From the sequence record OR836606.1: 64,000 nucleotides of DNA; one strand, 5' to 3'. The notes under the pieces were generated by a model, which was not told where the DNA came from, searched no databases, and saw only the letters and a list, made by a program, of their open reading frames with translations. Shown piece after piece: positions 6,525 through 55,542 of the stretch (the first letter of the stretch is position 1; each line of letters begins with the position of its first letter). Position numbers and translations under genes: made by a program.

Positions 6525-6536
6525 TATCTATAATTA

Positions 6537-29172: not shown

Positions 29173-31338
29173 ATGAAGCTTTATAGAATAGAAGAATTAA
29201 TTGACAGAAATAATAATGGTGAAATTGTTATTACTAAAATTAAAGATAATGAAAATAGACCATTGATTACAACCAAAACTAAAAAGAAAGAAAAATTATT
29301 ATTAAAAATAGAATTTGATTCTGAAGAATATAAAAAATTATCTTTTAATGAATATGAAGAGGTTAATCTATTTGAATCAACTTCATATATTAAAAAAGAA
29401 TATGGTATTGAAAATCCCATATTAAAACAAAACGAATTAACTAAAGATGTTTTAGTATATGAAGAAAGACCTTATGAATTAATTGGTGAATTAAAATATG
29501 ATTTATTCACTATTTATTATAATTACTTAGGTAAAATGGAAAGAATATACGATACCAACTATATAGGTAATATCGAGTATGAAGATTTAAATTTTAATAA
29601 TTTGGTAGAAAGAGAGGTGAAAATTGAGCCGTATCCGCCAATTTATAGAGATAATAATAAATACCCTAAAGATTATGCGTTTAATCAAAAAATATTAAAA
29701 GAATCTGAATTAGTAGATGGAATTATATATAATGGTTTAATAGAAGATGGAAGAATATTCTATGATGCATATTTAGGAGATACTTATAGAACTAGAGAAA
29801 GTGATTTCGATGGAGCATATAAGCGTAATTCAGGATATGACAGGTTCTTAGGAAAAGGATATGTGACTATAGAAGATGGAATATTAGAAATGAAAATTAA
29901 TATCCCTAAATCTTCTTATTATGAAGTAAGATTTGGTGCTGGAAACCATTATAATAATGGTACAGTAAATAAAGTGTTTATAGATAATGTAGGAAGTTAT
30001 TTTAGAACTCCTACGAATAGAAGTTTAGTTTGGTTTAGATCTATATTAGAAAAATATAATGACACAACAGATGAATATTTTGAAGAGGAACCAATATATT
30101 TAGAAAAAGGAACTCATACATTTAAATTTGAATATGATAAAAACTTCTCTACTAAAGAAAATGATATAGATGTTATATTACTAAAAGAAGTTGAATTTCC
30201 TGAAGCTAAAAATCCTTTCTATTCTAAAAAAGAAAATTATTTCAAAGTAGGAACTAGAACTATAATACCTATCAAAGATTTCTATATAGATAACGATTCT
30301 TATAATCAAGGAACTGGTAAAACTTTAGAGACTTTTAAAATAGATAATAATGCCACGAATATAGAAGAAGTTAGTAGTTTATCTGATAAATTTTCTTTAA
30401 CTACAGGAACTGTCAAGAATATTGTAACTTTAACTGAATCTGGAATGTATGATTTTAAAATATTGTTTAGAAGAAAATTTAATAATGATGAAATAAAGAA
30501 TTCTAAACAAGAGGAAGCTGTAGTAAATATTAATGGTAAAAACTATATTGCTAAGGTTCATGAAGATCATAACAATTTGTGTACTTTAGGTCTTTATAAA
30601 AGATTTCCCGAAATGAATATAGATGAATATATCAATGAAATTTATCTTAGAAAAGAAAATAATATACAAATAACTACAGCTGATGAAAATAATTTCTTAT
30701 TTGATTCTCTTATTATAAATTCAAATACTGTTAAGAAACATTCAGATGTTAATAAAAAGGCATTAGTATATCCTAATATTAAAAATTATTATTTTATATA
30801 TGAAGATTATGTAATGACCAATGGAAATAATGAATTAAATAATATTGATTCAGATACTGACCCTAGATCATTTGATAGTATTCAATCATACAGTAATGAA
30901 GGAATTGAGTATTATATTAAAGAAGAACCAATACATTATGCGCTTAATAATTTTGACTGGAAAGATAAAAAATTAAAATATGAAGTTCATTATAAGAATA
31001 ATATTCAAGGATTAGAAATTAAAGTTCCTATTGAATCTTATTACTTGCCTAAATTATTAATGATTCATGATGATATGGATTTTGATAGATATATGATATT
31101 TAAGCCTTATATATTTGAATCTATCAAATATACATCTAATGATTTAAGTTATGAAAATTATATACAAAAATTTAGTAAATATGATTCTAAATTAGTTCCT
31201 TTACAAAATTATACAGATGAATTATTATCAGAAATGATATATGACCTTGGAGAAGATTGGAAAGATAGACTATTGAACGAGGTAGTAAATCTGGATGACA
31301 TAACATTTTGTCATATTTACAGCAGAATTAATAAATAA
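29173..31338 (+). CDS. Hypothetical virion-associated protein (721 aa), beta-sandwich-like segments
   Basis: Long ORF; YYEVRFG / IYLEKGTHTF patterns reminiscent of carbohydrate-binding modules. Confidence 0.6.
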   Translation: MKLYRIEELIDRNNNGEIVITKIKDNENRPLITTKTKKKEKLLLKIEFDSEEYKKLSFNEYEEVNLFESTSYIKKEYGIENPILKQNELTKDVLVYEERPYELIGELKYDLFTIYYNYLGKMERIYDTNYIGNIEYEDLNFNNLVEREVKIEPYPPIYRDNNKYPKDYAFNQKILKESELVDGIIYNGLIEDGRIFYDAYLGDTYRTRESDFDGAYKRNSGYDRFLGKGYVTIEDGILEMKINIPKSSYYEVRFGAGNHYNNGTVNKVFIDNVGSYFRTPTNRSLVWFRSILEKYNDTTDEYFEEEPIYLEKGTHTFKFEYDKNFSTKENDIDVILLKEVEFPEAKNPFYSKKENYFKVGTRTIIPIKDFYIDNDSYNQGTGKTLETFKIDNNATNIEEVSSLSDKFSLTTGTVKNIVTLTESGMYDFKILFRRKFNNDEIKNSKQEEAVVNINGKNYIAKVHEDHNNLCTLGLYKRFPEMNIDEYINEIYLRKENNIQITTADENNFLFDSLIINSNTVKKHSDVNKKALVYPNIKNYYFIYEDYVMTNGNNELNNIDSDTDPRSFDSIQSYSNEGIEYYIKEEPIHYALNNFDWKDKKLKYEVHYKNNIQGLEIKVPIESYYLPKLLMIHDDMDFDRYMIFKPYIFESIKYTSNDLSYENYIQKFSKYDSKLVPLQNYTDELLSEMIYDLGEDWKDRLLNEVVNLDDITFCHIYSRINK

Positions 31339-31400: not shown

Positions 31401-32207
31401 TTATTTAAGATCTCCGTTACCAGAGCCGGTGATTCCGCCTTTATTATAGTCGAAATCAGATAAGTTGTCACCAGCAGTTTTAGGTGCAGCTGGATCGAAC
31501 ATACCTTGTTCAGTGAAGCTGTAAATTTCATTAAGTTTAGATTTAGCAAAATCATTTACACGTGAAGAGATTTCCATATTACCTGCAAAGTCTTGCTCAA
31601 TTTGTGCTTCTTCATGAGTTTCCATAGTGTAGTTATGGTGATCAAGAGAAATACGAGTAGGCATTACTGCAGTGTAATAAGCAGCGAATTCAATATTATT
31701 TTTAGATGTATTATTAGCATCCGGACGAGTTTGGATATATAATAATTCACCTGTATGGTTTTTAGCAGCATATTCTAAATTATGAATTTTAGGATAAGTT
31801 GCAATACCAGTACGAGGATCACGGATACCAGATACCCAATATTGATACATATTTTTAATTGGACTACCAGAAAATTCTTGGTGAGTCATTTGGAAACCAG
31901 TGTTTCCTTTTGTAATACTAGCGGCTGTACGATAGTTATTACCATTAAACGTATGCATATATTCATTTGTAGTCATTTCAATATTTTCTAAACCTTGGAA
32001 TGATTTAAAGTTCTTTTGTGTCATAGCTTTAAATCCAGGGAATTGTTTTTCAACCCAAGAAGGAATTTTAGTCCATACTATGAACGAATAACCAGTTACG
32101 AATGGATCAAACTCAAGAGTTTGAAGGTTCATATGTCCATTATAGAACCATTTGTTCTTAGCGATGTTATTGTCAAACACACGCTGATTTTTACTTGGTA
32201 AAATCAT
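31401..32207 (-). CDS. Tail tube protein
   Basis: 268 aa gene directly downstream of the sheath; host-like high-expression codon usage. Confidence 0.65.
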   Translation of the reverse strand: MILPSKNQRVFDNNIAKNKWFYNGHMNLQTLEFDPFVTGYSFIVWTKIPSWVEKQFPGFKAMTQKNFKSFQGLENIEMTTNEYMHTFNGNNYRTAASITKGNTGFQMTHQEFSGSPIKNMYQYWVSGIRDPRTGIATYPKIHNLEYAAKNHTGELLYIQTRPDANNTSKNNIEFAAYYTAVMPTRISLDHHNYTMETHEEAQIEQDFAGNMEISSRVNDFAKSKLNEIYSFTEQGMFDPAAPKTAGDNLSDFDYNKGGITGSGNGDLK

Positions 32208-32318
32208 ATATTATTTTCTCCTTTTCATTAATCTTATTTACATAAATGTATATTATAGAAGTTTATATATCATCTTCATACTTATAATTTAATATAAGAT
32301 CTTTATTTATATAATAAA

Positions 32319-32352
32319 ATAGGATACGACTGTATATTAAGTCGTATCCTAT
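32319..32352 (-). terminator. Terminator hairpin after sheath gene
   Basis: ATAGGATACGACT/AGTCGTATCCTAT inverted repeat. Confidence 0.65.
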
Positions 32353-32360
32353 AAATTTAA

Positions 32361-35300
32361 TTATTTTTCAACATTAATGTCAATGAAGATACGTTCAATA
32401 ACATTATTGAATTTAACAGAAATTTTAATACGTACAATACGTTGAGATTTATCATATTCATCTGCGCTAACTTCAGCTTGAATAGTTTCACAGCTACGGT
32501 TAGATACATAACGAGTAAGATAAGCATTCAACTCTGTACTCATAATTGAACGAGTTTCATCATCATTTAATTCAAATTGGTAATCAGAAACAAGAGTTTC
32601 TGCATCACGTTTAATTTGGTTTAATGTAAAGATATTATTCAAGTTAGATAATGGACCATCAGATTTAATAGAAGTCATCTGTGCACCAAATTTAGTTTTA
32701 TCAATATCTTTTTCAATGTAGTTGATTTTAGAAGTATAAAGTTTTTCTTTATAAGGTTCATTAGGAGCCCAAGATAAAGCTTTATGGCCTTCAACTAAAC
32801 CACGTCTAGGACCCGCAATTGGGAAATGTAAACCAGAGTTAACAGCTTGATAAGGAATCATTGAAGCTAAACGATAAGTTGGAGTGAAACGAATGTCTCT
32901 ACCAGTGTACTCATCATAATAAGTTAAATCTTGAGAGTAAATAGCTGTATACTCAGAAGAAACAGCAAATTCTTCTTTTCTCCATCTAATTGCATCTTCA
33001 GGACTAACTGGATAACGATCAGTAACTGTGTCGGCTAAGAATACAAAGTCTTTACGAACATTTTTAGCTAATTCAGAGATAGCGAACTTAACTTCATTAG
33101 AATAACGAGCATCAAGTACAACATCAAATGGATAAGCTTTAGTGTTTGTAATTTCTTCGTCTACTAAACCTTTATAAGCTTTAATTAATTCACGATTAAC
33201 TGCATTTTTACGATCCTTATATGAAATATCTTCAGCATATGAGAAGTCGCCATCAGAACCGAATAAGAATTTAACTGGACTAGAAATATCAATAAGGTTT
33301 GTATTGAAGTATTTAGAGTTAGCCTTATTCAAGTTAGCAACTGCTAATTCAATATTTTGATGAGCGTTTAATGTAATATCTCTTTCTGTATAGTTAGAAC
33401 GAGTTTGAATCATTTCGTCAATATTTTTACGGAAGATAGAAATATCATAATAGATTGTATTAACCGCAATACGGACTGCACGAGCAACTTTGTATACAGA
33501 AGCCACTGATACAGCTCTATTAATTAAATCTACTAATTGATTAGCAATTTCATTACAAGTTACGAATACTTCTTCACGGTTAACAGCGTTATCTTCCATT
33601 AATCCTAATGTAATATCGTCAACTAACATTTGTTTGTCAGCCAATGAATTTAACATGGATTCTGGAGAAACTAAGTCACGTTCTGAATCTTCATCGTCAC
33701 CATCAGGAGTAGTGTTAATAAAATTAATTGCTTCTTCAGGGAGTCCTTCACGTACTGCTGGCATTAAGTTATCTATTACATAACGTAATTCTGTTTCAGT
33801 ATCATTTAATACTTTAGCCATTCCTTCTAAGTTAGTTACAGATTTCATACCAATACGTAATTCAGCGATATCATTTGTAATATCTAAGATATTAGATTTA
33901 TGTTGAATACCGAAGATACGGATTTGGTCTTTCTGAGCTAATACATCACGTAATTCTTTAACATCAGCTTGATATTTAGGATTTGAAGAAATACCTGAAT
34001 TAGATTTATAAACTAATTCGTAAGCAGCATTAAGTTTATTACCATTATCTAAGAATTCATTTAATAATAAAGAACCAATTTCTTCTGTTCCAGAAAGAAC
34101 TGCAGAAAGGTTTTCTTCATTTGAATCTTCAAAATAAGTGTTATAATCTTGAACTAAACGTTCAGCTGCTCCAGCAGGTTTACCACCGAAATTAATTTCA
34201 GAAGGTTTGAATTTTCCAGCTAATTCTTCTTCAACTGCTTCTGCATCATTAATATCTGCAGATACATCTTCTTGATTTAATTTTTCAGAAACTAAATTAT
34301 CTTTAATAATTTTAGGTAAGTTACCTGTATCATCATCAAATAAACCATTAGATGGCACAATAATTTTATTCAATAATGATTTAAATTCTGTAAAATTATC
34401 AGAACGTAAAGTTTTGTATTGATCTCTCATATAAGAAAGACGGTCTGAATCTGTAACGAAAGTTTTTTCACGCATACCATTATCTAATGAAATTAATGCG
34501 TTTTCAACTGGATCATTAAAATCAGGTTTATTCAATACGTGTTTACCACTAATAGTTACTGGTAGACCTTTGTTATTATAACGGTGTAAAGCAATATGAA
34601 CATCTTCCGTTTGTTTAGTTTCTTCTGAATAGAAAGTTTCAGGAGTTCCATCAATACTAATTTTAGATTTACCAGAAATAACATCAATACTTGCAGGATG
34701 TACATTAGGGTTAATTTCTTTAGCTAGATTTTGGAAGTTTTCTAGATTAAATTTGATGTTAATGTATTTAGAATAACGATTAACAACTTCTTCAATAAAC
34801 ATTGATTCACCGGTATCTGAAATCGAATCTGGATCAAATGTAACTAAGAATGGACCATCAATTACGTTAACGTTACCAAAATCATCAAATTCAAGAACTT
34901 CTAAGTTGTAAACACGTTCAGTACGACCACTAGTGTCATAAGAAGTATTTAGAGTTAAACGAATACCTAAATCATTATAAGATTCACCACGACCATTAGG
35001 ATAAGCTAAAAGTAAGAAGTTATTGTTATAACCATCTACTGTTTGCTCATTACCACGGTCTAAAGTAATTTCATTAACTAATTCTTCAATATTTCTATTA
35101 TTTTTCTTAACAAATGCAATTGTTGGACGAATTTTGACATCGTCAATTTTAACCAATTCATTTGATTCTGTTAAAACTTTTTTACCATCTTTTTGTACTC
35201 TACTTTGTACGTTTAATATAGCATGTGAATAAGTTGCATTTTGCGGTAGAATACGTAATACATAAGCTTGACCACCAGAACGTAACCAGTTCACGATGTT

Positions 35301-35862: not shown

Positions 35863-36609
35863 TTAGTATTTCATAACATCTTCTAAAGGAGATCGTTTCT
35901 CTTTACCACCCTTAGCAGTTCTACCTATAGATGTTACAATTGTATCATCCATGCCTTCAAATGTAAATGAAGCAAATGTGGAGTTAAGGTTAGGTAATTT
36001 CTTAAGGTTATAGTTAATATAATCTAAAGGTCCAACATTCTGATTTTTATTTAAAGCTATTCTGTAAGGTGTTTCTACATTTTCTTTATATCTACATAAT
36101 TCAGCAATAATCAATTCATAAGTTAATGAATTAGATTTAAGGTTTACTTTATTACTATCTAATACATCATAATGGAGTTTAATAATATCATTATAATCTA
36201 TGAAGGTAGGTAGTTTCCCTGCATGGAATAAGAATAAGAAATTTTTAACCGTTTCAGCAGATTGTTCAATGTTAACATTAGCTACAAATTGACAACCTGT
36301 TCTTAATCTAAAAACTTCATACTGTATTGAATCCATATTGTCTGATAATTTTCCATCAAACTTAAAATTCTCTACATAATTAAAATCAATAGGATTAGGA
36401 TATTTCATCTTTCTTAGTACACCTTGTTTACCTTCTTCAGCCTGTTTTTCAGTTTTAATTTCAAATTGGAACATTCCATAAGTATTAATATATTCACCAC
36501 GGTGTTCAGATAAACCTTTTTTAAATTGCTCCCTTGGAATATAAATGTCTAATATTTCACCAGTGAATATAATAGAATTTCCATCTCTTTTAAGTTCTTT
36601 AAGTTTCAA
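35863..36609 (-). CDS. Putative split multisubunit RNA polymerase beta-prime C-terminal fragment
   Basis: ELIIAELCR...STFASFTFEGMDDTIVTSI...SPLEDVM parallels bacterial beta-prime EVIVRQM...SFISAASFQETTRVLTEAA...GLKENV; comparison by eye only. Confidence 0.45.
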   Translation of the reverse strand: MKLKELKRDGNSIIFTGEILDIYIPREQFKKGLSEHRGEYINTYGMFQFEIKTEKQAEEGKQGVLRKMKYPNPIDFNYVENFKFDGKLSDNMDSIQYEVFRLRTGCQFVANVNIEQSAETVKNFLFLFHAGKLPTFIDYNDIIKLHYDVLDSNKVNLKSNSLTYELIIAELCRYKENVETPYRIALNKNQNVGPLDYINYNLKKLPNLNSTFASFTFEGMDDTIVTSIGRTAKGGKEKRSPLEDVMKY

Positions 36610-36643
36610 TCCATTTTATCTCCTTTCTCATTAATTGAATTAA

Positions 36644-36655
36644 TATATCTTTGTT
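36644..36655 (-). promoter_or_regulatory. Candidate phage late promoter AACA-N6-TA
   Basis: Minus strand AACAAAGATATA. Confidence 0.45.
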
Positions 36656-36680
36656 ACAGATCAAAATTTAGCGTAAAAAA

Positions 36681-36712
36681 TCCCCTAACAATCAATTAAG
36701 AATGTTAGGGGA
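36681..36712 (-). terminator. Terminator after nrdF
   Basis: TCCCCTAACA/TGTTAGGGGA stem with U tract on minus strand. Confidence 0.8.
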
Positions 36713-36723
36713 ATACATGTAAA

Positions 36724-37794
36724 TTAATCTATATAATAACTATGACTAAATCTATCATCCGCTTTATTTTTATATGAATCGATTATATTCTTATTAAGTT
36801 CATTAATATCAATTGAATCATAATCTTCTTCTTTAGTATTTTCAGCTTTACCTAATAAATAACCATTTCCTTCTTGAGAGAAGAAATCGTGATTTCCAGT
36901 TGATGTCTTTAATCCTGCCATTACAATAGGATTTACATCTTCGTCAGTAGTTTCGAAAATAGGATCTAATTTAAGGTTTAATAATGCTTTATTGGCATTG
37001 TATTGAGCAAACAATTTAACATCTTCAGCCCAACCAATTTCAGTATAAACTTCTTCAATGAATTCACATTCAACTTGATAAAGTTCAAATAGTAAGTTAG
37101 TTACCCACATTTTAGTTTCATTTTTTTCTTCTTCACTTAATTTTTCAAATCTCTTACTGAATTTATATCCAATATATGAACCATGAACAGACTCATCTCT
37201 TAAAATTAATTTTATAATTTCAAGAACTGATTTAAGACTATCTTTCAATCTTAAAGGAGTATAGAAACCTGAATAGAATAAGAATGATTCTAAAAATACT
37301 GAAGCTGCTTGAACTTTAAGAATGTCTCCAGATTGATAAGCTTCATTTATTAATTTAATTTTCTTTTGTACATATTTATTATTTTCTGCCCATTCAAAGT
37401 TTTCATCTACTTCTTTTGAAGTACATAATGTAGTAAAAATAGTACTATAACTACGAGCATGAATTGATTCCATAAAACCAATATTTCTTAATACGTCTTC
37501 TTCTAATGTAGTTAATGCGCTATGCATTAAAGCATCAGAACCTTCACGAGACTGAAGTGTATCTAAAATAGTTAATTCAGCAAATACTTTATTAACTACC
37601 CCTTTAGTAACATCATCAGTGTTAGACCAAGCTTTAATATCATTTGAGACTGGAATACGTGTTGATGTCCAAAATTGAGACACTAAAGTATCATATGTCA
37701 TAATATCTACATAATCATCTACTCTATTCCAGTTTACAGGTGTATAATAACCTTTATCTTTTGTATAACTTGTTAAGAAATCTCCTCTATCCAT
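36724..37794 (-). CDS. nrdF: Ribonucleotide reductase class Ib beta subunit
   Basis: LTILDTLQ, ESIHARSYS, ESFLFYSGFY, RDESVHG metal-ligand motifs; NHDFFS. Confidence 0.95.
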   Translation of the reverse strand: MDRGDFLTSYTKDKGYYTPVNWNRVDDYVDIMTYDTLVSQFWTSTRIPVSNDIKAWSNTDDVTKGVVNKVFAELTILDTLQSREGSDALMHSALTTLEEDVLRNIGFMESIHARSYSTIFTTLCTSKEVDENFEWAENNKYVQKKIKLINEAYQSGDILKVQAASVFLESFLFYSGFYTPLRLKDSLKSVLEIIKLILRDESVHGSYIGYKFSKRFEKLSEEEKNETKMWVTNLLFELYQVECEFIEEVYTEIGWAEDVKLFAQYNANKALLNLKLDPIFETTDEDVNPIVMAGLKTSTGNHDFFSQEGNGYLLGKAENTKEEDYDSIDINELNKNIIDSYKNKADDRFSHSYYID

Positions 37795-37872
37795 ATTATC
37801 TTAAACTCCTTCTTTTAATTTTAAATATTATGAATTAGGATAGAATAAACATCTATCCTAATATTTCATTAA

Positions 37873-40236
37873 TTATATACTACAGCTTTCACATTCAACA
37901 ATACCTTGAGAACTTTCATCATGATCAGGTGAATAAATACGAGTATAATACATAGATTTAATACCTTTACTATAAGCATAGTTACGTAATCTACTAATAT
38001 CACGAGTAGTAGTTTCTTTATCTAAAGAATCTTTTTTCCATTCATAAAGTTCTGGATCAAGTTCATTCATTAAGTAAATATTCATAGAAATACCTTGATC
38101 TACGTGATATTGAGCTTCTGAATATAAATCAATCATATCTCTCATATCTAATTGGTAAGCATTTTTCTTAAAGTATTCAAAGTTGTCTGGTGTAATACCT
38201 GGCGCTGGATAGAAAGTAGTGCCTGTTTTACCTTCTACACGTTCTTCAATTAACTCAACAATAGGATGAATTGAAGGCGATACTTCTCTAACATAGCCAA
38301 TAGACCCATTAGGAGCTACAGCTAATCTATTCTGATTGTATAAACCATCCATAACAATATTATTTCTTAATTGTTCCCAATCGCTATCAGATGGAATAAA
38401 AATGTCTTTAAATAATTCTTTAACTTTTTCAGTACGTGGTTGAATATTTTTACCAATATAACGTTTATCAAAATAAGAACCATCAGCATATTCAGTTTTC
38501 TCAAATAAATAGAATGATTCATTTTTCTCTTTAGCAATTTTATTTGATTCAACTAATGTCCAATAATTTAATAACATGAAATAAATATTAGTGAAATCTT
38601 TAGATTCTTCAGAACCATATTGAATGTGGTTTTCAGCTAAGAAAGTGTGTAATCCCATAGCACCTAAACCAACTGTATGAAATAAATCATTTCCTTTTTT
38701 AATTGTAGGTACAGCTTCGATATTAGATTTTTCAGATACTGAATTTAAACTTCTTAACATAGTTCCTACTGATTTACCAAAATCTTCCGATTTCATTAAA
38801 CCGGATACAATAGTTGAAGCTAAGTTACATGAAATATCTGTTCCTGTTTTAACATATTGTTGATTATCATCAACTAATGAAGGATATTGTACCTGCAAAA
38901 TTTCTGAACACAAATTACTCATTTTAATTTTACCATGACTGATTGGATTAGCTCTATTAGCTGTATCAATATTAATGATATAAGGATATCCAGATTCTTG
39001 TTGTAATTTACTAATTGTGGTTTCTAAATCACGAGCATACATTTTATCTTTACTAATACGTTTATCATCTACAAAGATATCATAATAAGTATTAAAGTCA
39101 ATACTGTCGAAATCCAAATCGTAATATTTTTTAATGTCATATGGGCTAAATGTATATAATGATTTATTTTCTTTAACTAACTGATAATATTTGTCTGGAA
39201 CGGTTAAACCTAATGAAATAGTTTTTAATCTCACTTTCTCATCAGCATTTTCTTTCTTAGTATCTAAGAATTTCACTACATCTTTATGGAAAATATTTAA
39301 ATAGAGCGCACCTGCACCATTACGTTGCATTTATATTAACTATATGAATTTCATATAGATTAGACTATATCTTATACTTCTAATAAGTATTATTATATTT
39401 AATCGTTGGACAATCATAAAGATTGATGCTGATTAAGTTTATAAACTTTTCCAGCAATTAATAATATTTATACTGAGCCATTAAAATTAACCCAGTTGAT
39501 TTACATATGATAATGTATCTTCAAATACTTTCATAACCGGAACTACTCCTGAAGCGGCACCTTCTACACCTTTAATTGGATCATTATCTGCACGTAGATT
39601 TGATAAACTGATTCCACAGCCTCCGCCTCTTTTACTTAATTGAGCTACGTTAGTAACAGTTCTATAAATTGAAGCTAGAGAATCTTCCATTGTAACTAAG
39701 AAACAACTTATTAACTCACCAGAACGTTTTCTACCTGAATTGAGAAATGTCGGTGTAGCGGGTTGGAAAGTTCCTGTAATGATTTCTTTAGCGATATTCT
39801 TAGCTAATTCTTCATCTCCATCAGCTAAATATAAAGCTACAAATAAAATTCTATCTTCATATAGTTCTAATAAAATCTCCCCAGCATCATCTTTCATTGC
39901 ATACTGTTCATAGAATTTTTTAGCCCCCAATAAGCGAGTAAATCTATGCTTATAAGCCATTAATTCTTTCATTAATCCTTTAATGAACTCAAAATCATAA
40001 TTATTGATCATATCGCCATCAATATAATCATTATCAACTAGATAATTAATTTTTTCTTTATATGTTTTAAAGTATCTTACATTCTTATTAACTGAATCTA
40101 AGAAATATTTTTTAACTGAAGCTAATTCAAATTCTAAATCTAAATTACCGTCTTTTAATTGTGACCCTCTTGAGTTTAATTCGTTATATGAATAATCTTT
40201 AAATTTTTCTGAAGTTAAATCAATTTCTTTTGGCAT
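37873..40236 (-). CDS. nrdE: Ribonucleotide reductase class Ib alpha subunit, spliced (exons 40236-39490, 39327-37873; ~733 aa)
   Basis: FQPATPTFLN, SCF, SNLCSEI, APNGSI, YYTR motifs; removing 39328-39489 restores NQLG-QRNGAG in frame. Confidence 0.93.
39328..39489 (-). ncRNA. Miniature group I intron in nrdE (162 nt)
   Basis: P1 CUGGGU/GGCUCAG with U-G; P4 UGCUG/CAGCA; R GUCCAACGAUUAAA; S AAGAUAUAGUCU; P8 and P9 hairpins; terminal G. Confidence 0.9.
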
Positions 40237-43693: not shown

Positions 43694-46600
43694 TTAATCT
43701 AATAGATTCATTATTCTTTTTGATTTCTGATCTGGAGAAGAATTGTTATTCTGTAATAAAGGATTACTAGGGAGATTACCATCAATAATTCCACTAATAC
43801 GTTTCATGGATGCAATATCTTTTCTTCTAGCTTGTCTTTCTTTTTCAATTTCTTCTGCATTATCTCCATCTGCAGATACCATTGAACCGTATTTAACTTT
43901 AACAAATTTCTTAATGTCTTTCTCATAGTAATAAGCATATAAACAAAATAGATAACTCATAAGTAAATCGTCATGTCCGCCATCAGGGTGATCAATTCTA
44001 CCTTTTTTCATTTGAAGGGATTTTATTTGTTGGAATAATGGTTTATTATTAACTAAATAAGGTTTTTCTTCAACAATCATTGATAAAATTTCATTGAGCA
44101 TTAGATCTGCTATATAAATTCATGAGTTTAATTTAATTAAAATGAATTTATTCGACTTCGTCATCACTCTGACTTACTTTGCACTTTAAGTTTTTTCGTT
44201 ATAAACTACTTCAACAGAAAGCTTTAATCAAAGCAGAGGTTAAAGCTCTTAAGTCATCGCATTTGGACATTTAGAGGAATAAGACCTCATTTAGCCTGCC
44301 CAACAAAACGCTTACCATACAGTTTTAAATTGACAGCAGCGTTATAATCTCTATCCATTTTATGTCCACAATCACAGGAATACCATCTATCTGATAGTTT
44401 CAACTTATCTTCTTTAGTTAGAATTTGGCCACAATTAGAACATAATTGAGTTGATGGAAACCATCTGTCAGCTACAATAATAGTATTACCATTGCTTTCA
44501 GCTTTTTGTTCAAGTAAAGTCCTAAACTGTCTCCAATTGGACTGTGCGATTGATTTGGATAGTTTTCTATTTTTAATCATATTTGAAACCTGTAAATCTT
44601 CAATAGTTATATATTGATAATTGTTAATCAAGTTAGTAGTAATCTTATGAAGATAATCTTTTTTAATATTATTAATTCTATACCATACTTTTTGTATTTT
44701 GGTTTTCAATACATTGTATTTATTAGAACCATAAACTTTTTTAGATAATCTTTTTTGGTAGTATTTGATTTTATTATAGAGTGAGATTAGTTTATTATTT
44801 AATGAATGGTATTTTTTAAATTTACCGAAATCATCATTAATAATAGCTAAATCTTTTACACCTAAATCAATACCTACATGACTATTGTTATGAATTAATT
44901 TTTTACTGTTATCAACTTTCATTACTATCGAAGCGAAATACCTACCAGCATATTTGGATATAGTTACTTCTTGTATAGAATTATAATCTTTGTTTAAAGG
45001 TTCTTTCATTTTAATTAATGAATTTACACCACGCAATTTAAGTTTATTATTTTTCTCACCTTTAATTTGAATAGCGTAAGGATCTTTCCTATAGAACCTT
45101 GCTCTTAATTTAGATTTCTTTTTAGATTTAAATTTAGGATATTTACCATATCCTTTCCACATCATATTAAATGCTTTACCTAGATCTTCTGTAGAAGTTT
45201 CAATTATCATGATAATTTGATCTTTCTCCCAATCTTCTTTACATTTTTTAAGTTCATCACGAACTCTACGATGAGTTGGTTTTGGTAAAGATTTATCAAT
45301 TTGATAATTATTCCACATATATTTCCATTTATTAAGTGCCTTGTTATAAATATAACGACTATATCCAAAAGCTTGATTAAATATCTCTCGTTGTTCTTTA
45401 TTAGGTTTCAATTCGATTTTTATAGATTTGTACATGTGATTTTCACCTCGATTCATATTTCTAAATGATTTAGAATTTATAATTCATTGTTTAATATATC
45501 GAGGTAAAAATTATTTTAATTAAATTAAACTCACGAATTCCAGAAATCCCTTTCAGGTTCTGTTAAATAGCAAGACTATATCATGATCCATTAAATCAAT
45601 GGACCCCTCGCACTTCGAAAAACTTCTGATGAAGTTAATCTACTCTACTCACTTCACATAGTATTTCAACTATGCTTATTCAGGTTAATCAAACCTGTGC
45701 TTTCGATAGTCGTTGAACGTTTATCCATCATGTGGACACTTCGCTGCTAGACTTCCCATTGTTTACAAACTTTAGCGATCTAGGGTTTTCACCTAGACTT
45801 GTTTTCAGCATAGTTCATCTTAGAGATTTTTTCTGTCTTTCGACTGCATGTCACGCTATCCATTACTGGCATACGTTGTAGCTCTCTAAGCTTTAGGGTT
45901 TTACAAGCAATTCACGAGGTATTTTTACCACTAATTTCATGAATTAAAATTAGTTTAATTTACTTATATAGTAGCAGAGCGTGAAACATGAATTAATAAG
46001 AATTTAAGTCTTAATTCACTTAAAATATCTTAAATTAAAACTGTTTCGTTACTCTAGATTTTTTAGTTGTATCAATACCATATCTTCTTACTTGTTTGGT
46101 AACTTTATTAGTGCTATTTCTAGGAATTTCATTAAATACTTGCTTATTAACTTCAACTTGTTTTTCTGCTACTCTATTCTTTAATGAGTAGAAAATATTG
46201 TCTCCAATACCATCAGTTTGAATCATATCTTCTATCATTACAGTACCTGCATAGTTACGTTCAGGTATTAATACTGCATTAGGTATATAAAGCGTAATAA
46301 GTTCTTTAATTAATTTTCTAAAAGTAGGTCCATTAATTACATTATTTTGGAAAATCATTACAGGCTCTAATGTACCTGGATCAACTACAGTAAATGCAGT
46401 ATTATCTCGACCAAGACCACCAGATATATCAATACCAACAAGCCAGTTCTTTTCATGCATATTATCCATCTTTTTAACCATATAAACATAATAAGTTTTA
46501 CCATTTATTTTAAAATCAATAGTATTATATATCTCTTTATTTGCATATAATGATAATTCTGACATTTGTTGTTCATCAAATAAAGAATCATCGTTACTAA

Positions 46601-48276
46601 ACGCCCATTCAAGAAGTATCTCACGTTTAACTGCTTCTAAAGAACCAATTTGACGTTTTTGCTTTTCTAACCAAGCATCATCTTTACCTAATTCTTTATA
46701 TGAATATTCTATATAGATGAATGAATTGCCTGAATTACTTTCCATATACTCTTCTAATTTTTCATTACCCTCTTCTTCAGAATTAATGTAATAATCATAT
46801 ATTTTTTCTGTCCATTGTGCTGCATCATTCATTTGCTCAAAGAAGAACTGTCCTTGAGGTACATCCAAAGTACTCATATTTTTTATCCTATATTAATTTA
46901 ATATAGATAAGACTATATCTTAGTATATTATAATACCATTTATTATTTAGTCGTTAAACAAGTATTATCAACTTGATGCTGATTGTCTTAATAAAGATTT
47001 TCCAGCAATTAAATAAATAAGCCCAGTTTAATTTTAGGCGTTGTTGTAATTAGAAGACCATAAGGTGTGCCATTTTTCTTAGCTATTGCAGATGCTGTAG
47101 AAACTGCCTTTTAATATTAATCTACATGGATTCCATATAGAATAGACTATATCTTAGTATTATATTAATACTATTTATTATTTAGTCGTTGAACACTATA
47201 AATAGCGATGCTGATCGTCTTAATAAAGATTTTCCAGCAATTAAATAAATAAGCCCGCATTAATTTCAGGCCTCATTGCTTCAAACATTGTTTGGTTGTG
47301 TGGAATGAATGCCCACTCATCCAACCAGACCATAGGTCATTATGTTAACTATATTTAAAAAATATAGATCAGACTATATCATACTCATATAAATAAGTGA
47401 ATATATTTAGTCGTTGAACACTATAATTAGTGATGCTGATTAAGATAATAATCTATTCCAGCAATTAATATTCTTTTACTACTGCAACTATCTACAGTAG
47501 AACCACGCTATTTTAGACTATATCTTCAATTTTATAATTGTCTTTTATTTAGTCGTTGAACACATATGTGATGCTGATCAAATTAAATAATTTGTCCCAG
47601 CAATTAAAAAGATTTATAGCAAGCCATGATATTAACCTGCTTTATTTGCACTCTCACTGTTAGTCGGAGGTGAAACTGTTTTAATAGTATTGTTATTACT
47701 AGCTAATTGAAATTCGTTGATCTTATCTCTATCATTTTTATCTCCAAAATTAGCTAATACATATTCAGGTAAACATTTCTCTTTAAATAAGTTTTTAAGA
47801 CGTTTTAAGTTCTCAGTTGTATCTGAATAAGATTTGTGTGTAAATAACATTGTATAGTTACTACCTACTAATAACATTATCCATGAATAATAACATACTG
47901 CTGAATATGTTTTATAGTGCTGACGTGGAAGCATTATAGCTGTATCTAAATTGTGTAACATACAAAATGTCATCGCCATATTACCTCTATGAAGTTCATA
48001 CATAACCTTACCGCCAGGAACAGGAACTCTTATAACTTCCCTTAAATAAAACCATATATTAATTTTAGCTTCCCTTAATACACGGGTTTTCATTTCATCA
48101 GAAAGTTCAGGATCCCAAGGATCTACTCCTACAAGATTTTTATCATATAGAGTTAATGGAATCCCATAATTTCTGACGTTGTTCTTCTTAAGATCCCTAG
48201 CCACTCTTAAAAAACTAACATTATTAGTTTTATAATCGTAATAAACTTTTTTCTTTAATTTTGGTTTAATTGTCAT
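43694..48276 (-). CDS. terL: Terminase large subunit, spliced from six exons (48276-47635, 47507-47494, 47337-47268, 47107-47036, 46874-46052, 44106-43694; ~677 aa)
   Basis: Walker A-like PRQHYKT; spliced product restores GRGSTVPMVWLDEWAF (Walker B), LLITTTP-STLD, nuclease VGIDISGG and GGHDDLLMS; exon sum 2034 nt is a multiple of 3. Last junction is the least certain. Confidence 0.88.
44287..45435 (-). CDS. tnpB: TnpB RNA-guided endonuclease (IS200/IS605/IS607 OrfB family)
   Basis: N-terminal HTH (KIELKPNKEQ..FGYSRYIYN), RuvC GIDLG / TIEDL / DRDYNAAVNL, Zn finger CSNC..CDC; likely start ATG 45435 after GAGGTG (track start 45456). Confidence 0.93.
   Translation of the reverse strand: MYKSIKIELKPNKEQREIFNQAFGYSRYIYNKALNKWKYMWNNYQIDKSLPKPTHRRVRDELKKCKEDWEKDQIIMIIETSTEDLGKAFNMMWKGYGKYPKFKSKKKSKLRARFYRKDPYAIQIKGEKNNKLKLRGVNSLIKMKEPLNKDYNSIQEVTISKYAGRYFASIVMKVDNSKKLIHNNSHVGIDLGVKDLAIINDDFGKFKKYHSLNNKLISLYNKIKYYQKRLSKKVYGSNKYNVLKTKIQKVWYRINNIKKDYLHKITTNLINNYQYITIEDLQVSNMIKNRKLSKSIAQSNWRQFRTLLEQKAESNGNTIIVADRWFPSTQLCSNCGQILTKEDKLKLSDRWYSCDCGHKMDRDYNAAVNLKLYGKRFVGQAK
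45480..45491 (-). promoter_or_regulatory. Candidate late promoter for tnpB inside an RBS-sequestering hairpin
   Basis: Minus strand AACAATGAATTA lies between hairpin arms 45498-45509 and 45441-45452; the 3' arm contains the GAGGUG SD. Confidence 0.6.
46875..47035 (-). ncRNA. Miniature group I intron T4 in terminase (161 nt)
   Basis: P1 GCCU/GGGC; P AAUUGCUGGAAA, Q AAUCAGCAUC, R GUUUAACGACUAAA, S AAGAUAUAGUCU; ends AUG; restores TTTP-STLD. Confidence 0.85.
47108..47267 (-). ncRNA. Miniature group I intron T3 in terminase (160 nt)
   Basis: P1 AGGCCU/GGGCUU; full P/Q/R/S set; terminal G; restores EAMRP-AVSTA. Confidence 0.88.
47338..47493 (-). ncRNA. Miniature group I intron T2 in terminase (156 nt)
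   Basis: P1 CUACUGU/GCAGUAG; P/Q/R/S; phase-2 junction GT|A restores GSTVPMVWLDE. Confidence 0.9.
47508..47634 (-). ncRNA. Miniature group I intron T1 in terminase (127 nt, no P9)
   Basis: P1 GCAGGU/GGCUUGC; P3 UCUUUU/AAAAGA; P4; R GUUCAACGACUAAA; S AAGAUAUAGUCU followed only by AAAAUAG; restores KAG-RG. Confidence 0.88.
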
Positions 48277-54180: not shown

Positions 54181-55542
54181 ATGTCTAAAGATATAAAAGC
54201 TTATCTTATTAATGAATCTAACACAACTTCTCAACCAGAAGTAGTTCAAGATAATAATAAATCGGTTAGATTCATTGCTGAGTTACAAGAAGCTGATAGA
54301 CAAAACCGTAATGGTCGTGTTTATCGTAAAGATGTTATTCAAAGTGGTTTAGATAGTCCAGTAATACAAGAAAAATTAGCAAGAAAAACTTTTTATGGTG
54401 AGTTTTAGGTTAAATGGCTCACATTAAATTATATTAATTGCTGGAAAAGATTATTATCTTAATCAGCATCAACTTAATACAAGTTGTTCAACGACTAAAT
54501 ATATAGCCTAGATGATATAGTCTAACCTTTATTAAAATGATAAAGAATAATAATTTGCAGGACATCCTTTAAGTGATGAACCTAAACGACAAATGTATAT
54601 TGATCAACGTAATATTTCTCATATCGTTACTAGAACATGGTGGAATGGTAATAAATTAATGGCAGAAGTAGAAACGGCACAAACAGCAGCTGGTAAAGAT
54701 ATGAAAGGTTTAATCGGACAAAAGTCTGACGTATCTTTCTCAATGCGTGGTTTCAGTAAAATTAATAGAACACCTTCTGGCGAAGTTGAAGTTACTAAAC
54801 CTTTAAGATTAATCTGTTAAATTGTAGCAGCTTTATATAGAAATATATATTGAAAAAGAATATTAATTGCTAAGAAGTTTAATTAAGCCAATTAGCATCA
54901 ACTTAATACAAGTTGTTCAACGACTAAATATATTTACTCTTAATAAGAGTATGATATAGTCTAATCTTAATAGTAAGATCTATTAAGTTAATATAATGTA
55001 CGATAAAATAAACCTTGTCGCTTCTTAAAGCAATTTAAGAATGATAAAACTATTAATTGCTAAAATCTTTTATTAAAGTAATTAGCATCAACTTAATAAA
55101 AGTTGTTCAAAGACTAAATATAGTTTATCCTTTTATAGGATAATGATATAGTCTGATCTATATTATACTAATATAGATAACATAAATGTGGGTAGTAATT
55201 CCATCTCATCAAGATTCTTACATTCAAAATATTATTTCAGAAGGACACAATAATTATAATCCTAATGATTTACAAATGGTAAATGAATCAATTGATATGT
55301 TCACTAATGGTAAAATTACTGAATTTTCTCCTAGAGAAGTTTTAACTTATATTAAAGAAAATTCAGATAATGTAAAATACATTGCTGAAGATATGGGGTT
55401 TGCTGGAGTTGATGAATCTAATATCAGTTATGATAAAGGATCTCAATTAGCTTCAATTAGAGAAAGTAATAAAACTATTAAAGTTTTCTTAGAAGAATCT
55501 GTTCTTAATGGACTTGATGATTTCTATAGAAACTTTAAATAA
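54181..55542 (+). CDS. Prohead (capsid maturation) protease, spliced from four exons (54181-54403, 54558-54817, 54999-55004, 55189-55542; 280 aa)
   Basis: ADRQNRNGRVY; spliced YGESGHP (catalytic His), FSMRG (Ser), LICYDWVVIPSH (Asp); exon sum 843 nt in frame. Confidence 0.9.
54404..54557 (+). ncRNA. Miniature group I intron P1 in prohead protease (154 nt)
   Basis: P1 GUGAGU/GGCUCAC; AAUUGCUGGAAA, AAUCAGCAUC, GUUCAACGACUAAA, GAUAUAGUCU; terminal G. Confidence 0.88.
54818..54998 (+). ncRNA. Miniature group I intron P2 in prohead protease (181 nt)
   Basis: P1 CUGU/GCAG; P4 variant UGCUA/UAGCA; R and S motifs; ends AUG. Confidence 0.88.
55005..55188 (+). ncRNA. Miniature group I intron P3 in prohead protease (184 nt)
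   Basis: P1 CGAU/GUCG; P4 UGCUA/UAGCA; R GUUCAAAGACUAAA; S GAUAUAGUCU; ends AUG. Confidence 0.88.

Follow-up and report, generated by a model that had tools for sequence, protein, structure and literature searches.

The terL Locus of Phage LY01

The window analysed here, a stretch of 64,000 nt, belongs to Staphylococcus phage LY01, a virulent jumbo phage. Positions in the window equal those in record OR836606.1 minus 186000. The terminase gene terL is composed of six exons, and between exons 5 and 6 it is interrupted by an element that combines a group I intron with an IS607-type module, an IStron (Table 1). The junctions were placed by alignment to the uninterrupted 677-aa terminase of phage S6. 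In the direction of the gene, the 5' exon ends in ...AAATCTAGAG (last base 46052), the intron runs from 46051 to 44107, and the 3' exon begins with ATCTAATGCTC... (first base 44106). Excision at these ends restores terL exactly, and the six joined exons form an open reading frame of 2034 nt that encodes a 677-aa TerL, with 657 of the 677 residues (97%) identical to S6 TerL. The position and exact ends thus obtained are identical to those given in an earlier note, which had been made from the letters of the DNA alone. The same note had placed the interruption in the terminase nuclease domain, and this agrees with a weak PDB match (E 0.0014), in which the insertion point corresponds to about residue 496 of T4 gp17, between the nuclease motifs DCSEG and HDDL. 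In the current annotation, a 'mobile element protein' stands beside several 'hypothetical' terL fragments.

Table 1. Features of the terL IStron of phage LY01 and its flanking exons (window positions).
Feature	Position	Strand	Basis
terL exon 5 (5' exon)	46052..46874	(-)	S6 alignment, exon joining
TAGAG, last 5 nt of 5' exon: predicted TAM, 5' strand of P1 and 'AG' core for a serine recombinase	46052..46056	(-)	RGAG at five sites; pairs with CUCUG
Whole IStron (group I intron and IS607-type module), 1945 nt, in terL	44107..46051	(-)	S6 alignment, exon joining
P1 (long extension hairpin) and P2	45926..46051	(-)	MFE folds of three homologues; P2 from Rfam alignment
CUCUG, the internal guide sequence; partner of exon UAGAG, with a G-C pair at the splice site	45975..45979	(-)	Covariation with the exon
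Group I core P2-P9 (P, Q, R and S elements; GAAA loop on P9)	45554..45956	(-)	Rfam RF00028, alifold covariation
Long AU-rich stem, 5' arm	45508..45539	(-)	Self-blastn, 33 nt at 94%; duplex prediction
tnpB, 382 aa, intact RuvC D-E-D and zinc finger, Shine-Dalgarno GAGGTG upstream	44287..45435	(-)	Pfam, NCBIfam, structure alignment, dN/dS
Predicted omega-RNA scaffold (about the last 60 nt of tnpB and the 180-nt 3' region)	44107..44346	(-)	Covariation, identity; start approximate
Long AU-rich stem, 3' arm; alternatively a local terminal hairpin of the omega-RNA	44117..44149	(-)	Self-blastn, folds
Right end / 3' splice site ...ATAGCAG	44107..44113	(-)	Kept in nine family members, unrelated flanks beyond
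Predicted guide/target, first 20 nt of 3' exon, ATCTAATGCTCAATGAAATT	44087..44106	(-)	Position beside the conserved right end
terL exon 6 (3' exon)	43694..44106	(-)	S6 alignment, exon joining

The Group I Ribozyme

The ribozyme takes up the 5' 510 nt of the element. A full-length match to the Rfam family Intron_gpI (RF00028; model positions 1-253) was found at 45956-45554(-), with an E-value of 1.3e-4 that is valid for a search space of 601 nt alone and a score of 26.1 bits, under the gathering score of 50. Rfam searches of the 64-kb window at the gathering threshold, and of 4.8 kb at E<=10, returned no group I match. RNAalifold applied to five homologous cores recovered P3, P4, P5, P6, P8 and P9 with its GAAA loop, with compensatory changes in 31 of 78 pairs. 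Among the conserved core elements, R reads GTTCAACGACTA and S reads GATATAGTCT. P1 was predicted independently in three homologues, with the pairing UAGAG/CUCUG in the terL element and GGAG/CUCC in the other two; the internal guide sequence CUCCC is combined with an exon ending in GGAG both in the copy in the LY01 DNA polymerase gene and in a related element of Listeria phage LPJP1. The group I core proposed earlier is therefore recovered in P1, P3, P4, P8 and the GAAA loop of P9 by Rfam alignment, folds and alifold together.

The splice-site pair of P1 is G-C and not U.G, which is atypical for group I introns in general and the rule for group B IStrons (PMC4227781). The intron ends in ...GCAG and thus has the required terminal G. 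A 5' splice site one base downstream, after a U that could form a U.G pair with the internal guide sequence, was considered and rejected, since no G-terminated 3' site then restores the frame.

TnpB and the Stem That Encloses It

The only Pfam-recognisable open reading frame of the intron is tnpB. Its conserved start is the ATG at 45435, preceded by GAGGTG, and the mechanical reading frame extends to 45456. The protein matches OrfB_IS605, a Cas12f1-like TNB and an HTH in Pfam, and scores 236 bits against the NCBIfam model guided_TnpB (cut-off 100). Alignment to the ISDra2 TnpB structures (8h1j/8bf8; E about 6e-41) shows that the three RuvC residues, D (GIDLG), E (ITIEDL) and D (MDRDYNAA), and the CxxC...CxC zinc finger are all retained. 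Against its paralogues, tnpB has a dN/dS of 0.14-0.17 at a dS of 0.56-0.71. By these comparisons, TnpB is catalytically intact and under purifying selection.

The gene is enclosed by a stem of 33 pairs with one bulge, which is 85% A-U (-32 kcal/mol) and whose arm lies about 70 nt from the tnpB start. This stem closes off tnpB and returns the right end, and with it the 3' splice site, to the vicinity of the ribozyme. Four observations of the earlier note stand up: tnpB is intact; its stop lies 180 nt from the intron 3' end (44287 against 44107); the five other small open reading frames of the intron have no Pfam match, and none encodes a homing endonuclease of the LAGLIDADG, GIY-YIG, HNH or His-Cys box type; and a peripheral stem loops out the gene, although it had been given as 28 bp long and not as the 33 pairs measured here.

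Predicted omega-RNA, Guide and TAM

The region 3' of tnpB is more conserved than the gene itself at silent positions: among paralogues, identity is 87-89% in the omega region and 54-60% at synonymous sites of tnpB, and 13 of 29 alifold pairs among eight homologues are compensatory. The 180 nt form a conserved, covarying RNA under selection that terminates exactly at the splice site. Nine family members align up to ...ATAGCAG and then diverge into unrelated 3' flanks, with no target duplication. The 5' flanks of five independent insertion sites all end in RGAG.

Since the predicted omega scaffold runs to the 3' splice site, the 3' exon would supply the guide with its first bases, and the 5' exon the TAM with its last. 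Both this assignment and a scaffold that reaches the splice site had been proposed in the earlier note, and they are consistent with the nine right ends and the five RGAG flanks. The bases of RGAG do double duty, in P1 pairing and as the recombinase core, so that the A at -2 is not assignable to the TAM alone.

Classification and Related Systems

With a probability that we put at about 80%, the terL element is a group B (IS607-type) IStron, belongs to the AG/CAG subtype typified by CsISt1, and has been deprived of its serine transposase by loss. This estimate covers the identity and anatomy of the element; the steps of its activity are less certain. Group B IStrons have a G as the last base of the 5' exon, insertion occurs after GG (AG in CsISt1), the element ends in CGG (or CAG), and an inverted repeat around the ORFs forms a stem of 15-34 bp with more than 80% A-U (PMC4227781). 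The LY01 element has the group B order (core 45956-45554, tnpB 45435-44287, right end as the 3' splice site at 44107) and the group B ends (...TAGAG/ and ...GCAG/, that is, a 5' exon ending in G, insertion after AG and a CAG terminus). Its stem, with 33 pairs and 85% A-U, falls in the same range. In addition, the 5' flank is conserved, the 3' flank is variable and no target-site duplication is present. The junction at the terL site has a 2-nt AG ambiguity, as expected for the core of a serine recombinase. The one group B feature that is absent, from both the element and the LY01 genome, is ORF A, a complete or remnant IS607 TnpA.

It follows that the element is no new kind of element. TnpB in the seat of a homing endonuclease had been put forward as a novelty, but this is the standard architecture of group B IStrons. 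The IS607-type IStron was described in 2014, in a survey that includes members with ORF B only, the AG/CAG variant seen in LY01 and examples from phages of C. botulinum (PMC4227781). Exon-guided, RNA-guided cutting of the empty site has been shown for CboIStron, including a construct without tnpA (PMC10690162), and TnpA-independent homing of TnpB-only IStrons is already a printed proposal (PMC13565253).

Multiple known systems resemble the LY01 element in part. CsISt1 of Clostridium sporogenes (Tourasse et al. 2014, PMC4227781) also carries a group I intron followed by tnpB alone, is inserted after AG, ends in CAG, has a 5' exon ending in G and has a long AU-rich stem around its ORF, a likeness drawn from the published description and not from sequence comparison. 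CsISt1 is bacterial and chromosomal, whereas the LY01 element belongs to a virulent jumbo phage, where it interrupts an essential late gene. CboIStron of Clostridium botulinum (IS607 family; Zedaveinyte et al., PMC10690162) shares the architecture as well, and here too the C. botulinum IStrons are set beside LY01 through published descriptions. CboIStron, and by prediction the LY01 element, has an omega scaffold overlapping the 3' splice site, a guide taken from the 3' flank and a TAM at the end of the 5' flank; the TAM and the right end differ at -3 by G against C in both (TGGG/TCGG in CboIStron, RGAG/GCAG in LY01). Splicing and guide formation are mutually exclusive in CboIStron and, by analogy, would be so in LY01. 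TnpA(S) is present in CboIStron, whose core is GG, whose TAM is TGGG and whose activity has been measured, whereas the LY01 element has an AG core and no TnpA and is known from its sequence alone.

Phage group I introns with homing endonucleases (T4 td/I-TevI, Twort, SPO1) are self-splicing and likewise found in essential genes, carry a nuclease gene that a peripheral stem loops out, and differ in presence or absence among relatives, as in LY01. In contrast to these introns, the LY01 nuclease is a transposon-derived, RNA-guided TnpB, the last base of the 5' exon is G and not U, and the target is predicted to be recognized by an exon-derived guide instead of by protein.

Transposase, Paralogues and Distribution

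The LY01 genome contains six tnpB genes, five of which lie behind group I ribozymes; three are type-1 tnpB modules. Two ribozyme-tnpB elements are inside essential genes, namely terL and the DNA polymerase gene, and one solo tnpB module lacks the entire left end. The copies are 81-89% identical. The paralogues appear to be old (dS about 0.6), and recent spread is not indicated.

No tnpA was found in the window or the rest of the record by tblastn with the IS607 TnpA of LPJP1 (best E 0.13). A regular-expression screen of LY01 for serine-recombinase and HUH motifs was also empty. That expression would miss the motif YYRVS of the LPJP1 TnpA, and tblastn with LPJP1 TnpA was used instead; HUH-type TnpA was screened by regular expression alone. 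The absence of tnpA claimed in the earlier note thus extends to the whole of LY01. A cognate tnpA together with dispersed copies had been named as the mark of an ordinary IS or IStron; dispersed copies are present, and a tnpA occurs in LPJP1, while LY01 itself is transposase-free.

The closest relative found is the IStron of Listeria phage LPJP1 (MZ422438.1, about 237-2710 of locus L005), with about 70% nucleotide identity, which shares the ribozyme and the right end ...ATAGCAG. Its internal guide sequence CUCCC is that of the LY01 DNA polymerase copy, and it is inserted after GTGGAG. Unlike the LY01 element, it keeps an IS607 serine transposase (NCBIfam 178 bits, cut-off 110; Pfam Resolvase 3e-18) and lies between a Shine-Dalgarno sequence and the groL start codon rather than in coding sequence. 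The tnpB of LPJP1, in contrast to the intact gene in terL, is broken within the zinc finger by an in-frame stop, which was not read through in the searches. The record of LPJP1 does not describe the element as an IStron.

The terL IStron was not found in any other phage; of ten sequenced relatives compared, LY01 alone has it. In IMG/VR, a search with the single LY01 TnpB gave no match, and a search with an alignment of nine TnpB sequences gave relatives at 25-31% identity only. The same alignment found no match in GTDB genomes, and the conserved TnpB peptide motifs and the omega-RNA DNA motif were not found in 185,579 representative bacterial and archaeal genomes; IMG/VR likewise gave no true match to these motifs. 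The omega-RNA motif TGACGAAGTYGANWAAATTC matched 129 stretches in three collections, and just two of these combine it with the upstream motif ACTTAAGAG and an ATAGCAG end. One of the two is a contig already in the sample; the remaining matches look like chance. None of the metagenomic relatives is in a terminase gene, and an exact-protein look-up in a metagenomic clade of about 240-kb phages returned occupied sites only and no empty alleles. The family may be under-sampled. Uracil-DNA phages have been reported to sequence poorly.

Intron-less Alleles

All seven intron-less terL alleles examined read ...TCGTG/, whereas LY01 reads ...TAGAG/. A T in place of A at -2 (GTG and not GAG) is found in these seven of seven terL alleles and in four of four DNA polymerase alleles; as the outgroups have the same, GTG looks ancestral at both sites. 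Cleavage of intron-less terL alleles had been presented as the expected outcome. This was overstated, since every sequenced one has ...TCGTG/ instead of ...TAGAG/, and the alleles of the sequenced relatives may be uncleavable. Of the 20 positions of the terL guide, 19 agree with the terL genes of MarsHill and Madawaska, the guide of the DNA polymerase copy has a 21-nt match to MarsHill and S6, and the empty site of the solo tnpB module in MarsHill has GGAG followed by a 14-nt perfect guide match. No co-conversion tract was seen at the terL site, where differences private to LY01 do not rise in density towards the junction. Related phages have uracil for thymine in their DNA, as reported or presumed (10.1101/2020.12.14.422802).

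Possible Mode of Action and Maintenance

By analogy with CboIStron, the element would be transcribed as part of the terL pre-mRNA, and the majority of transcripts would self-splice, with the G-ending 5' exon paired to the C of the internal guide sequence. The unspliced fraction would give rise to an omega-RNA with the first 16-20 nt or so of exon 6 as its guide. Splicing would compete with guide formation, because the 3' stem arm can either reach across to the far-off 5' arm or fold on itself locally. TnpB with this omega-RNA would cut RGAG followed by exon-6 sequence, i.e., the unoccupied terL site, while the occupied site would be protected because ...GCAG replaces ...RGAG (C and not G at -3). 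Recombinational repair of the cut from an IStron-bearing genome would then copy the element in, or the cut would merely harm a competing phage.

What has kept the element in LY01 can be read in several ways. TnpB may act as a transposase-free, RNA-guided homing endonuclease that converts the intron-less terL of related phages in mixed infections, a reading to be held tentatively. It is favored by the purifying selection on TnpB and the omega scaffold despite the absent tnpA, by the guide matches to the terL gene of MarsHill and Madawaska and to the DNA polymerase gene of MarsHill and S6, and by the solo-module site in MarsHill, where GGAG and a perfect guide match occur together; TnpA-independent, TnpB-dependent spread of IS605 in plasmid populations has also been reported, according to work cited in PMC13565253. 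The apparently ancestral GTG at the putative TAM of the intron-less terL and DNA polymerase alleles argues against it, as do the lack of a second phage with the terL IStron and of a visible co-conversion tract, and the uracil-DNA of related phages may affect how the TAM is read. TnpA-free homing is something that we infer for LY01. The deep divergence of the paralogues (dS 0.56-0.71) and the restriction of the element to LY01 among ten relatives would suit an immobile relic, inserted long ago by a since-lost TnpA and inherited only vertically. TnpB would then be kept because, bound to the intron 3' end, it tunes how an essential late gene is spliced, or for cutting competitors without copying. 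TnpB is known to repress IStron splicing through competitive binding (PMC10690162), and PMC13565253 cites a case in which interference between jumbo phages is mediated by an intron endonuclease. A relic of this kind is to be held just as tentatively. Against it, the scaffold is kept right up to the guide junction along with all RuvC residues, which argues for retained DNA targeting, and a functionless copy should decay, as the LPJP1 tnpB with its in-frame stop did.

An ordinary non-autonomous IStron that is still moved in trans, by an IS607 TnpA from a co-infecting phage or the host, appears unlikely. The AG core and RGAG context at five sites are what target choice by a serine recombinase predicts, tnpA is present in the LPJP1 relative, and spread of IStrons without ORF A has been inferred in bacteria (PMC4227781). 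LY01 has no tnpA, though, and its copies include no near-identical pair that would mark recent transposition; the solo copy is without its left end, and the TnpB and omega motifs were not found in the representative bacterial and archaeal genomes.

Implications for Jumbo Phages

IStron studies so far have dealt with clostridia and Bacillus, in which the intron works in concert with both TnpA and TnpB. In LY01, a virulent phage with recombination-based replication and contact with its relatives during mixed infections, nature provides a setting free of TnpA. The published idea of TnpB-only, 'non-restorative' homing becomes directly testable with existing isolates (LY01 against MarsHill or S6), because LY01 has six tnpB genes, two of them in essential genes, with intact nucleases and conserved guide scaffolds. 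For annotators, the finding gives reason to drop the 'mobile element protein' label beside 'hypothetical' terL fragments. On a wider and speculative view, TnpB-omega-RNA modules, whether embedded in introns or left on their own by loss of the ribozyme, might play, with RNA guidance, the part that homing endonucleases play in T-even phages, being spread and maintained without a transposase in AR9/S6-like uracil-DNA jumbo phages and in the large metagenomic clade of about 240-kb phages by cutting unoccupied alleles during co-infection. If this were true, susceptible alleles would be told apart by the synonymous difference between GAG and GTG beside the two sites in essential genes.

Structure of the interrupted terminase gene

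Staphylococcus phage LY01 (OR836606.1; 258,897 bp) is an S6/MarsHill-like jumbo phage of pig-farm origin, and the window covers its bases 186001-250000. The large terminase TerL of phage S6 consists of 677 amino acids and is encoded without interruption. Alignment of S6 TerL to the window divides LY01 terL into six exons and five introns, and joining of the exons gives an ORF of 2034 nt that matches S6 TerL at 657 of 677 residues. The fifth intron is an IStron, a group I intron combined with tnpB, and its boundaries match exactly those proposed in the earlier note.

Features of LY01 terL, its IStron and related loci (window positions unless a locus or record is named)
Feature	Position	Strand	Remark
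terL exon 1	48276-47635	-	S6 TerL alignment
Mini group I intron	47634-47508	-	127 nt
terL exon 2	47507-47494	-	S6 TerL alignment
Mini group I intron	47493-47338	-	156 nt
terL exon 3	47337-47268	-	S6 TerL alignment
Mini group I intron	47267-47108	-	160 nt
terL exon 4	47107-47036	-	S6 TerL alignment
Mini group I intron	47035-46875	-	161 nt
terL exon 5	46874-46052	-	S6 TerL alignment
Fifth intron, IStron	46051..44107	-	1945 nt; S6 TerL alignment
P1, intron strand	45979-45975		CUCUG
Rfam Intron_gpI alignment	45956-45554		full-length
Stem arms	45539-45508 / 44149-44117		33 pairs, 85% A-U
tnpB	45435-44287	-	382 aa; Shine-Dalgarno GAGGTG; inside the stem
terL exon 6	44106-43694	-	S6 TerL alignment
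R/S element pairs	54486-54514, 54915-54953, 55105-55145	+	
R/S element pair	39371	-	
R/S element pair	59348	+	
Other LY01 tnpB loci	L010:35831-37741; L008:13164-14497; L008:~4700-6600; L008:~31915-33555; L009:~36545-38208		outside the window
LPJP1 IStron	L005 ~237-2710, MZ422438.1		ribozyme + serine transposase + tnpB; complete

The four remaining terL introns are canonical, with T at the 5' exon end, G at the intron end and clear P, Q, R and S elements, and none of the four reaches any Rfam threshold. Their sizes (127-161 nt) and the 14-nt micro-exon flanked by two of them seem out of the ordinary. About 45 places in the LY01 genome (L007-L010, pieces of the record, included) show a group I R element (GTTCAACGACTA) and an S element (GATATAGTCT) separated by 30-40 nt, suggestive of dozens of group I mini-introns. 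In the GenBank record, the gene fragments are labelled as separate hypothetical proteins.

Ribozyme and TnpB of the IStron

The group I ribozyme occupies the first ~510 nt of the IStron. The Intron_gpI match (26.1 bits, E 1.3e-4; gathering score 50) was seen only when the search was confined to 601 nt and was absent from larger searches. Independent support for the core comes from covariation: RNAalifold of five homologous cores recovered P3, P4, P5, P6, P8 and P9 (GAAA loop), with compensatory changes in 31 of 78 pairs. The classical R and S elements are present. P1 is formed by exon-end UAGAG and intron CUCUG around a long extension hairpin, and emerges from MFE folding of each homologue singly; Listeria phage LPJP1 and the DNA polymerase copy of LY01 both pair exon GGAG with guide sequence CUCC, a compensatory change in this helix. 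The splice junction departs from the group I norm: the last base of the 5' exon is G (CTAGAG/, the slash marking the junction) instead of U, and it pairs with C. Boundary placement is ambiguous by 2 nt (AG/...AG/). An AU-rich stem encloses the remainder of the element, including tnpB, whose start codon lies ~70 nt from the stem arm.

The intact TnpB of the earlier note was confirmed by alignment to ISDra2 TnpB structures, with the RuvC acidic triad and the zinc finger in place and the stop codon, as claimed, 180 nt before the intron end. The protein scores 236 against NCBIfam guided_TnpB (cut-off 100) and its dN/dS is 0.14-0.17. The remaining ORFs of the IStron gave no Pfam match. The claimed lack of tnpA extends to the entire LY01 record (six pieces; best tblastn E 0.13 with LPJP1 TnpA).

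An IS607-type IStron without its transposase

Group B, IS607-type IStrons are recognized by a 5' exon terminating in G and a stem of 15-34 bp, >80% A-U, around the ORFs, where a short repeat allows alternative local folding of the 3' arm (Tourasse et al. 2014, PMC4227781). Since a G-ended 5' exon, junction ambiguity and an AU-rich stem define this group, the terL IStron belongs to it. Group B elements insert after GG and end in CGG, except for CsISt1, which has ORF B only, inserts after AG and ends in CAG (PMC4227781); the terL IStron has exactly this pattern. Its closest relative, in LPJP1 (~70% nucleotide identity), shares the ribozyme, the right end and the kind of insertion site (GTGGAG/) but differs in carrying a 209-aa serine recombinase between ribozyme and tnpB. 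This protein matches NCBIfam 'IS607 family transposase' (178 bits, cut-off 110) and Pfam Resolvase (3e-18), thus providing a direct IS607 link. By this comparison, the LY01 IStron has lost the recombinase gene that LPJP1 retained. The LPJP1 element lies between the Shine-Dalgarno GTGGAG and the start codon of groL, and its tnpB is broken by an in-frame stop within the zinc finger (CSCC*Y). The annotation of the record gives 'IS607 family transposase' for the tnpB fragment and 'hypothetical protein' for the recombinase.

The tnpB genes of LY01 number six and fall into three types; tnpA is absent. Two further copies are of type 1, as in terL: one is an IStron within the gene for the family B DNA polymerase, the other a solo tnpB with omega module but without ribozyme. 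For the tnpB of the type-2 IStron, phage Machias has a close homologue, which stands alone with upstream space too short for a ribozyme. The two type-3 IStrons have a mini-intron core, a 5' flank ...CG/ and a right end ...GACAG/. An ORF-less ribozyme relative (L010:~29830-30215; record ~176830-177215), with a core 79% identical to the IStron ribozyme, is inserted after GCCGGAG, has an AU-rich stem capped by a 3-nt loop, and resembles the IStron derivatives without ORFs known from Bacillus cereus.

Five further relatives were found in metagenomes (L012, L023, L024, L025 and L062). TnpBs 57-63% identical to that of LY01, more than 100 clusters at 90% identity, topped the protein search, mostly on ~230-255-kb contigs of jumbo-phage appearance. 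In a set of ENA metagenome contigs (L013-L022 and L169-L171; ~140-243 kb), L013 holds a full IStron without tnpA. In L015-L022 the IStron is truncated from its 5' side down to the 3' half of P9 plus the stem arm, and its right end, ...ATGACAG, runs into the start codon of the DUF8224 gene that follows.

Right end, predicted guide and target sites

The right ends of nine elements were compared (three LY01 type-1 copies, the five metagenome relatives and LPJP1). In all nine, conservation runs to ...ATAGCAG with unrelated sequence directly beyond, indicating that right end, 3' splice site and end of the conserved RNA coincide, as the earlier note had assumed. The 240 nt upstream share a fold in which 13 of 29 pairs show compensatory changes, and this non-coding segment is 87-89% identical among LY01 paralogues, against 54-60% at tnpB synonymous sites (pS 0.40-0.46).

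On the left side, RGAG closes each of five independent insertion sites: TCTAGAG (terL), AGTGGAG (DNA polymerase gene), AAGTGGAG (LPJP1 groL leader), TTAGGAG (solo tnpB) and GCCGGAG (ORF-less relative). With GCAG at the right end, an occupied site can be told from an empty one by position -3 (C vs G). CboIStron of Clostridium botulinum shows an equal relation, TAM TGGG against right end TCGG, and -3 is its most discriminated position (PMC10690162).

At the terL and DNA polymerase sites, both in essential genes, the IStron is missing from every other sequenced S6-like phage. The empty terL allele of seven relatives reads ...AAATCTCGTG/AT.. against ...AAATCTAGAG/AT.. in LY01 (Arg CGT vs AGA), and the predicted 20-nt guide has one mismatch in MarsHill and Madawaska, three in S6 and PALS_2, and four in SA1, AH12 and PB50. 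At the DNA polymerase site, four relatives have ...AGTGGTG/TTGATATTG... against ...AGTGGAG/ in LY01 (Gly GGT vs GGA); the 21 bases after the site are identical to LY01 in MarsHill and S6. At both sites, position -2 is A in the occupied allele and T in every empty allele, distant relatives included, so A is the derived state. Chance is an unlikely explanation (roughly <1e-3) for an identical private T-to-A change at two sites, because LY01-private differences average ~4% per site. The A may have come in with the element, or may be needed for insertion (AG core), P1 pairing (A-U) or the TAM, alternatives inseparable by sequence. In effect, both sites may be immune in the sequenced relatives.

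The solo tnpB lies between the Shine-Dalgarno and start codon of a small gene; the MarsHill empty site, TAGGAG/ATGACTTTATATG, keeps the motif and a 14-nt perfect guide match. The gene body downstream is deleted in LY01, and no intron rescues the gene. Of MarsHill gp221, only ~14 nt of the start and ~25 nt of the end survive in the LY01 homologue, which lies downstream of the solo tnpB (L008:13040-13163 vs L035:3227-3568 of MarsHill). This deletion begins about where a TnpB cut would be expected relative to the right end, which could be coincidence.

Homing and significance

The anatomy, boundaries, conservation and selection of the terL IStron are established at the sequence level. By analogy with CboIStron (PMC10690162), self-splicing would restore terL, and unspliced transcripts would yield an omega-RNA with exon 6 as guide; TnpB would cut unoccupied RGAG-target sites, into which recombination would copy the IStron. 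The 3' stem arm would toggle between intron fold and omega fold (PMC10690162; PMC13521648). TnpA-free homing is plausible; it has already been proposed for TnpB-only IStrons, and TnpB-dependent, TnpA-independent spread has been reported for IS605 in plasmids (PMC13565253).

Several observations weigh against current activity of the terL IStron. The empty terL and DNA polymerase alleles are mismatched at -2, the LY01 copies have long diverged (dS ~0.6), the terL IStron is found in no second phage, and no co-conversion tract was seen around the terL site. In addition, LY01-like phages likely have uracil-DNA (10.1101/2020.12.14.422802).

IStrons, ORF-B-only IStrons, the AG/CAG variant, C. botulinum phage IStrons and the exon-derived guide are all in print. 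For these phages, the searchable papers describe intron-split terL and DNA polymerase genes and make no mention of a transposase or TnpB. The novelty lies in the host: a virulent jumbo phage has the element in its essential genes, has several copies and lacks a transposase. The terL IStron is of moderate value as a test system.
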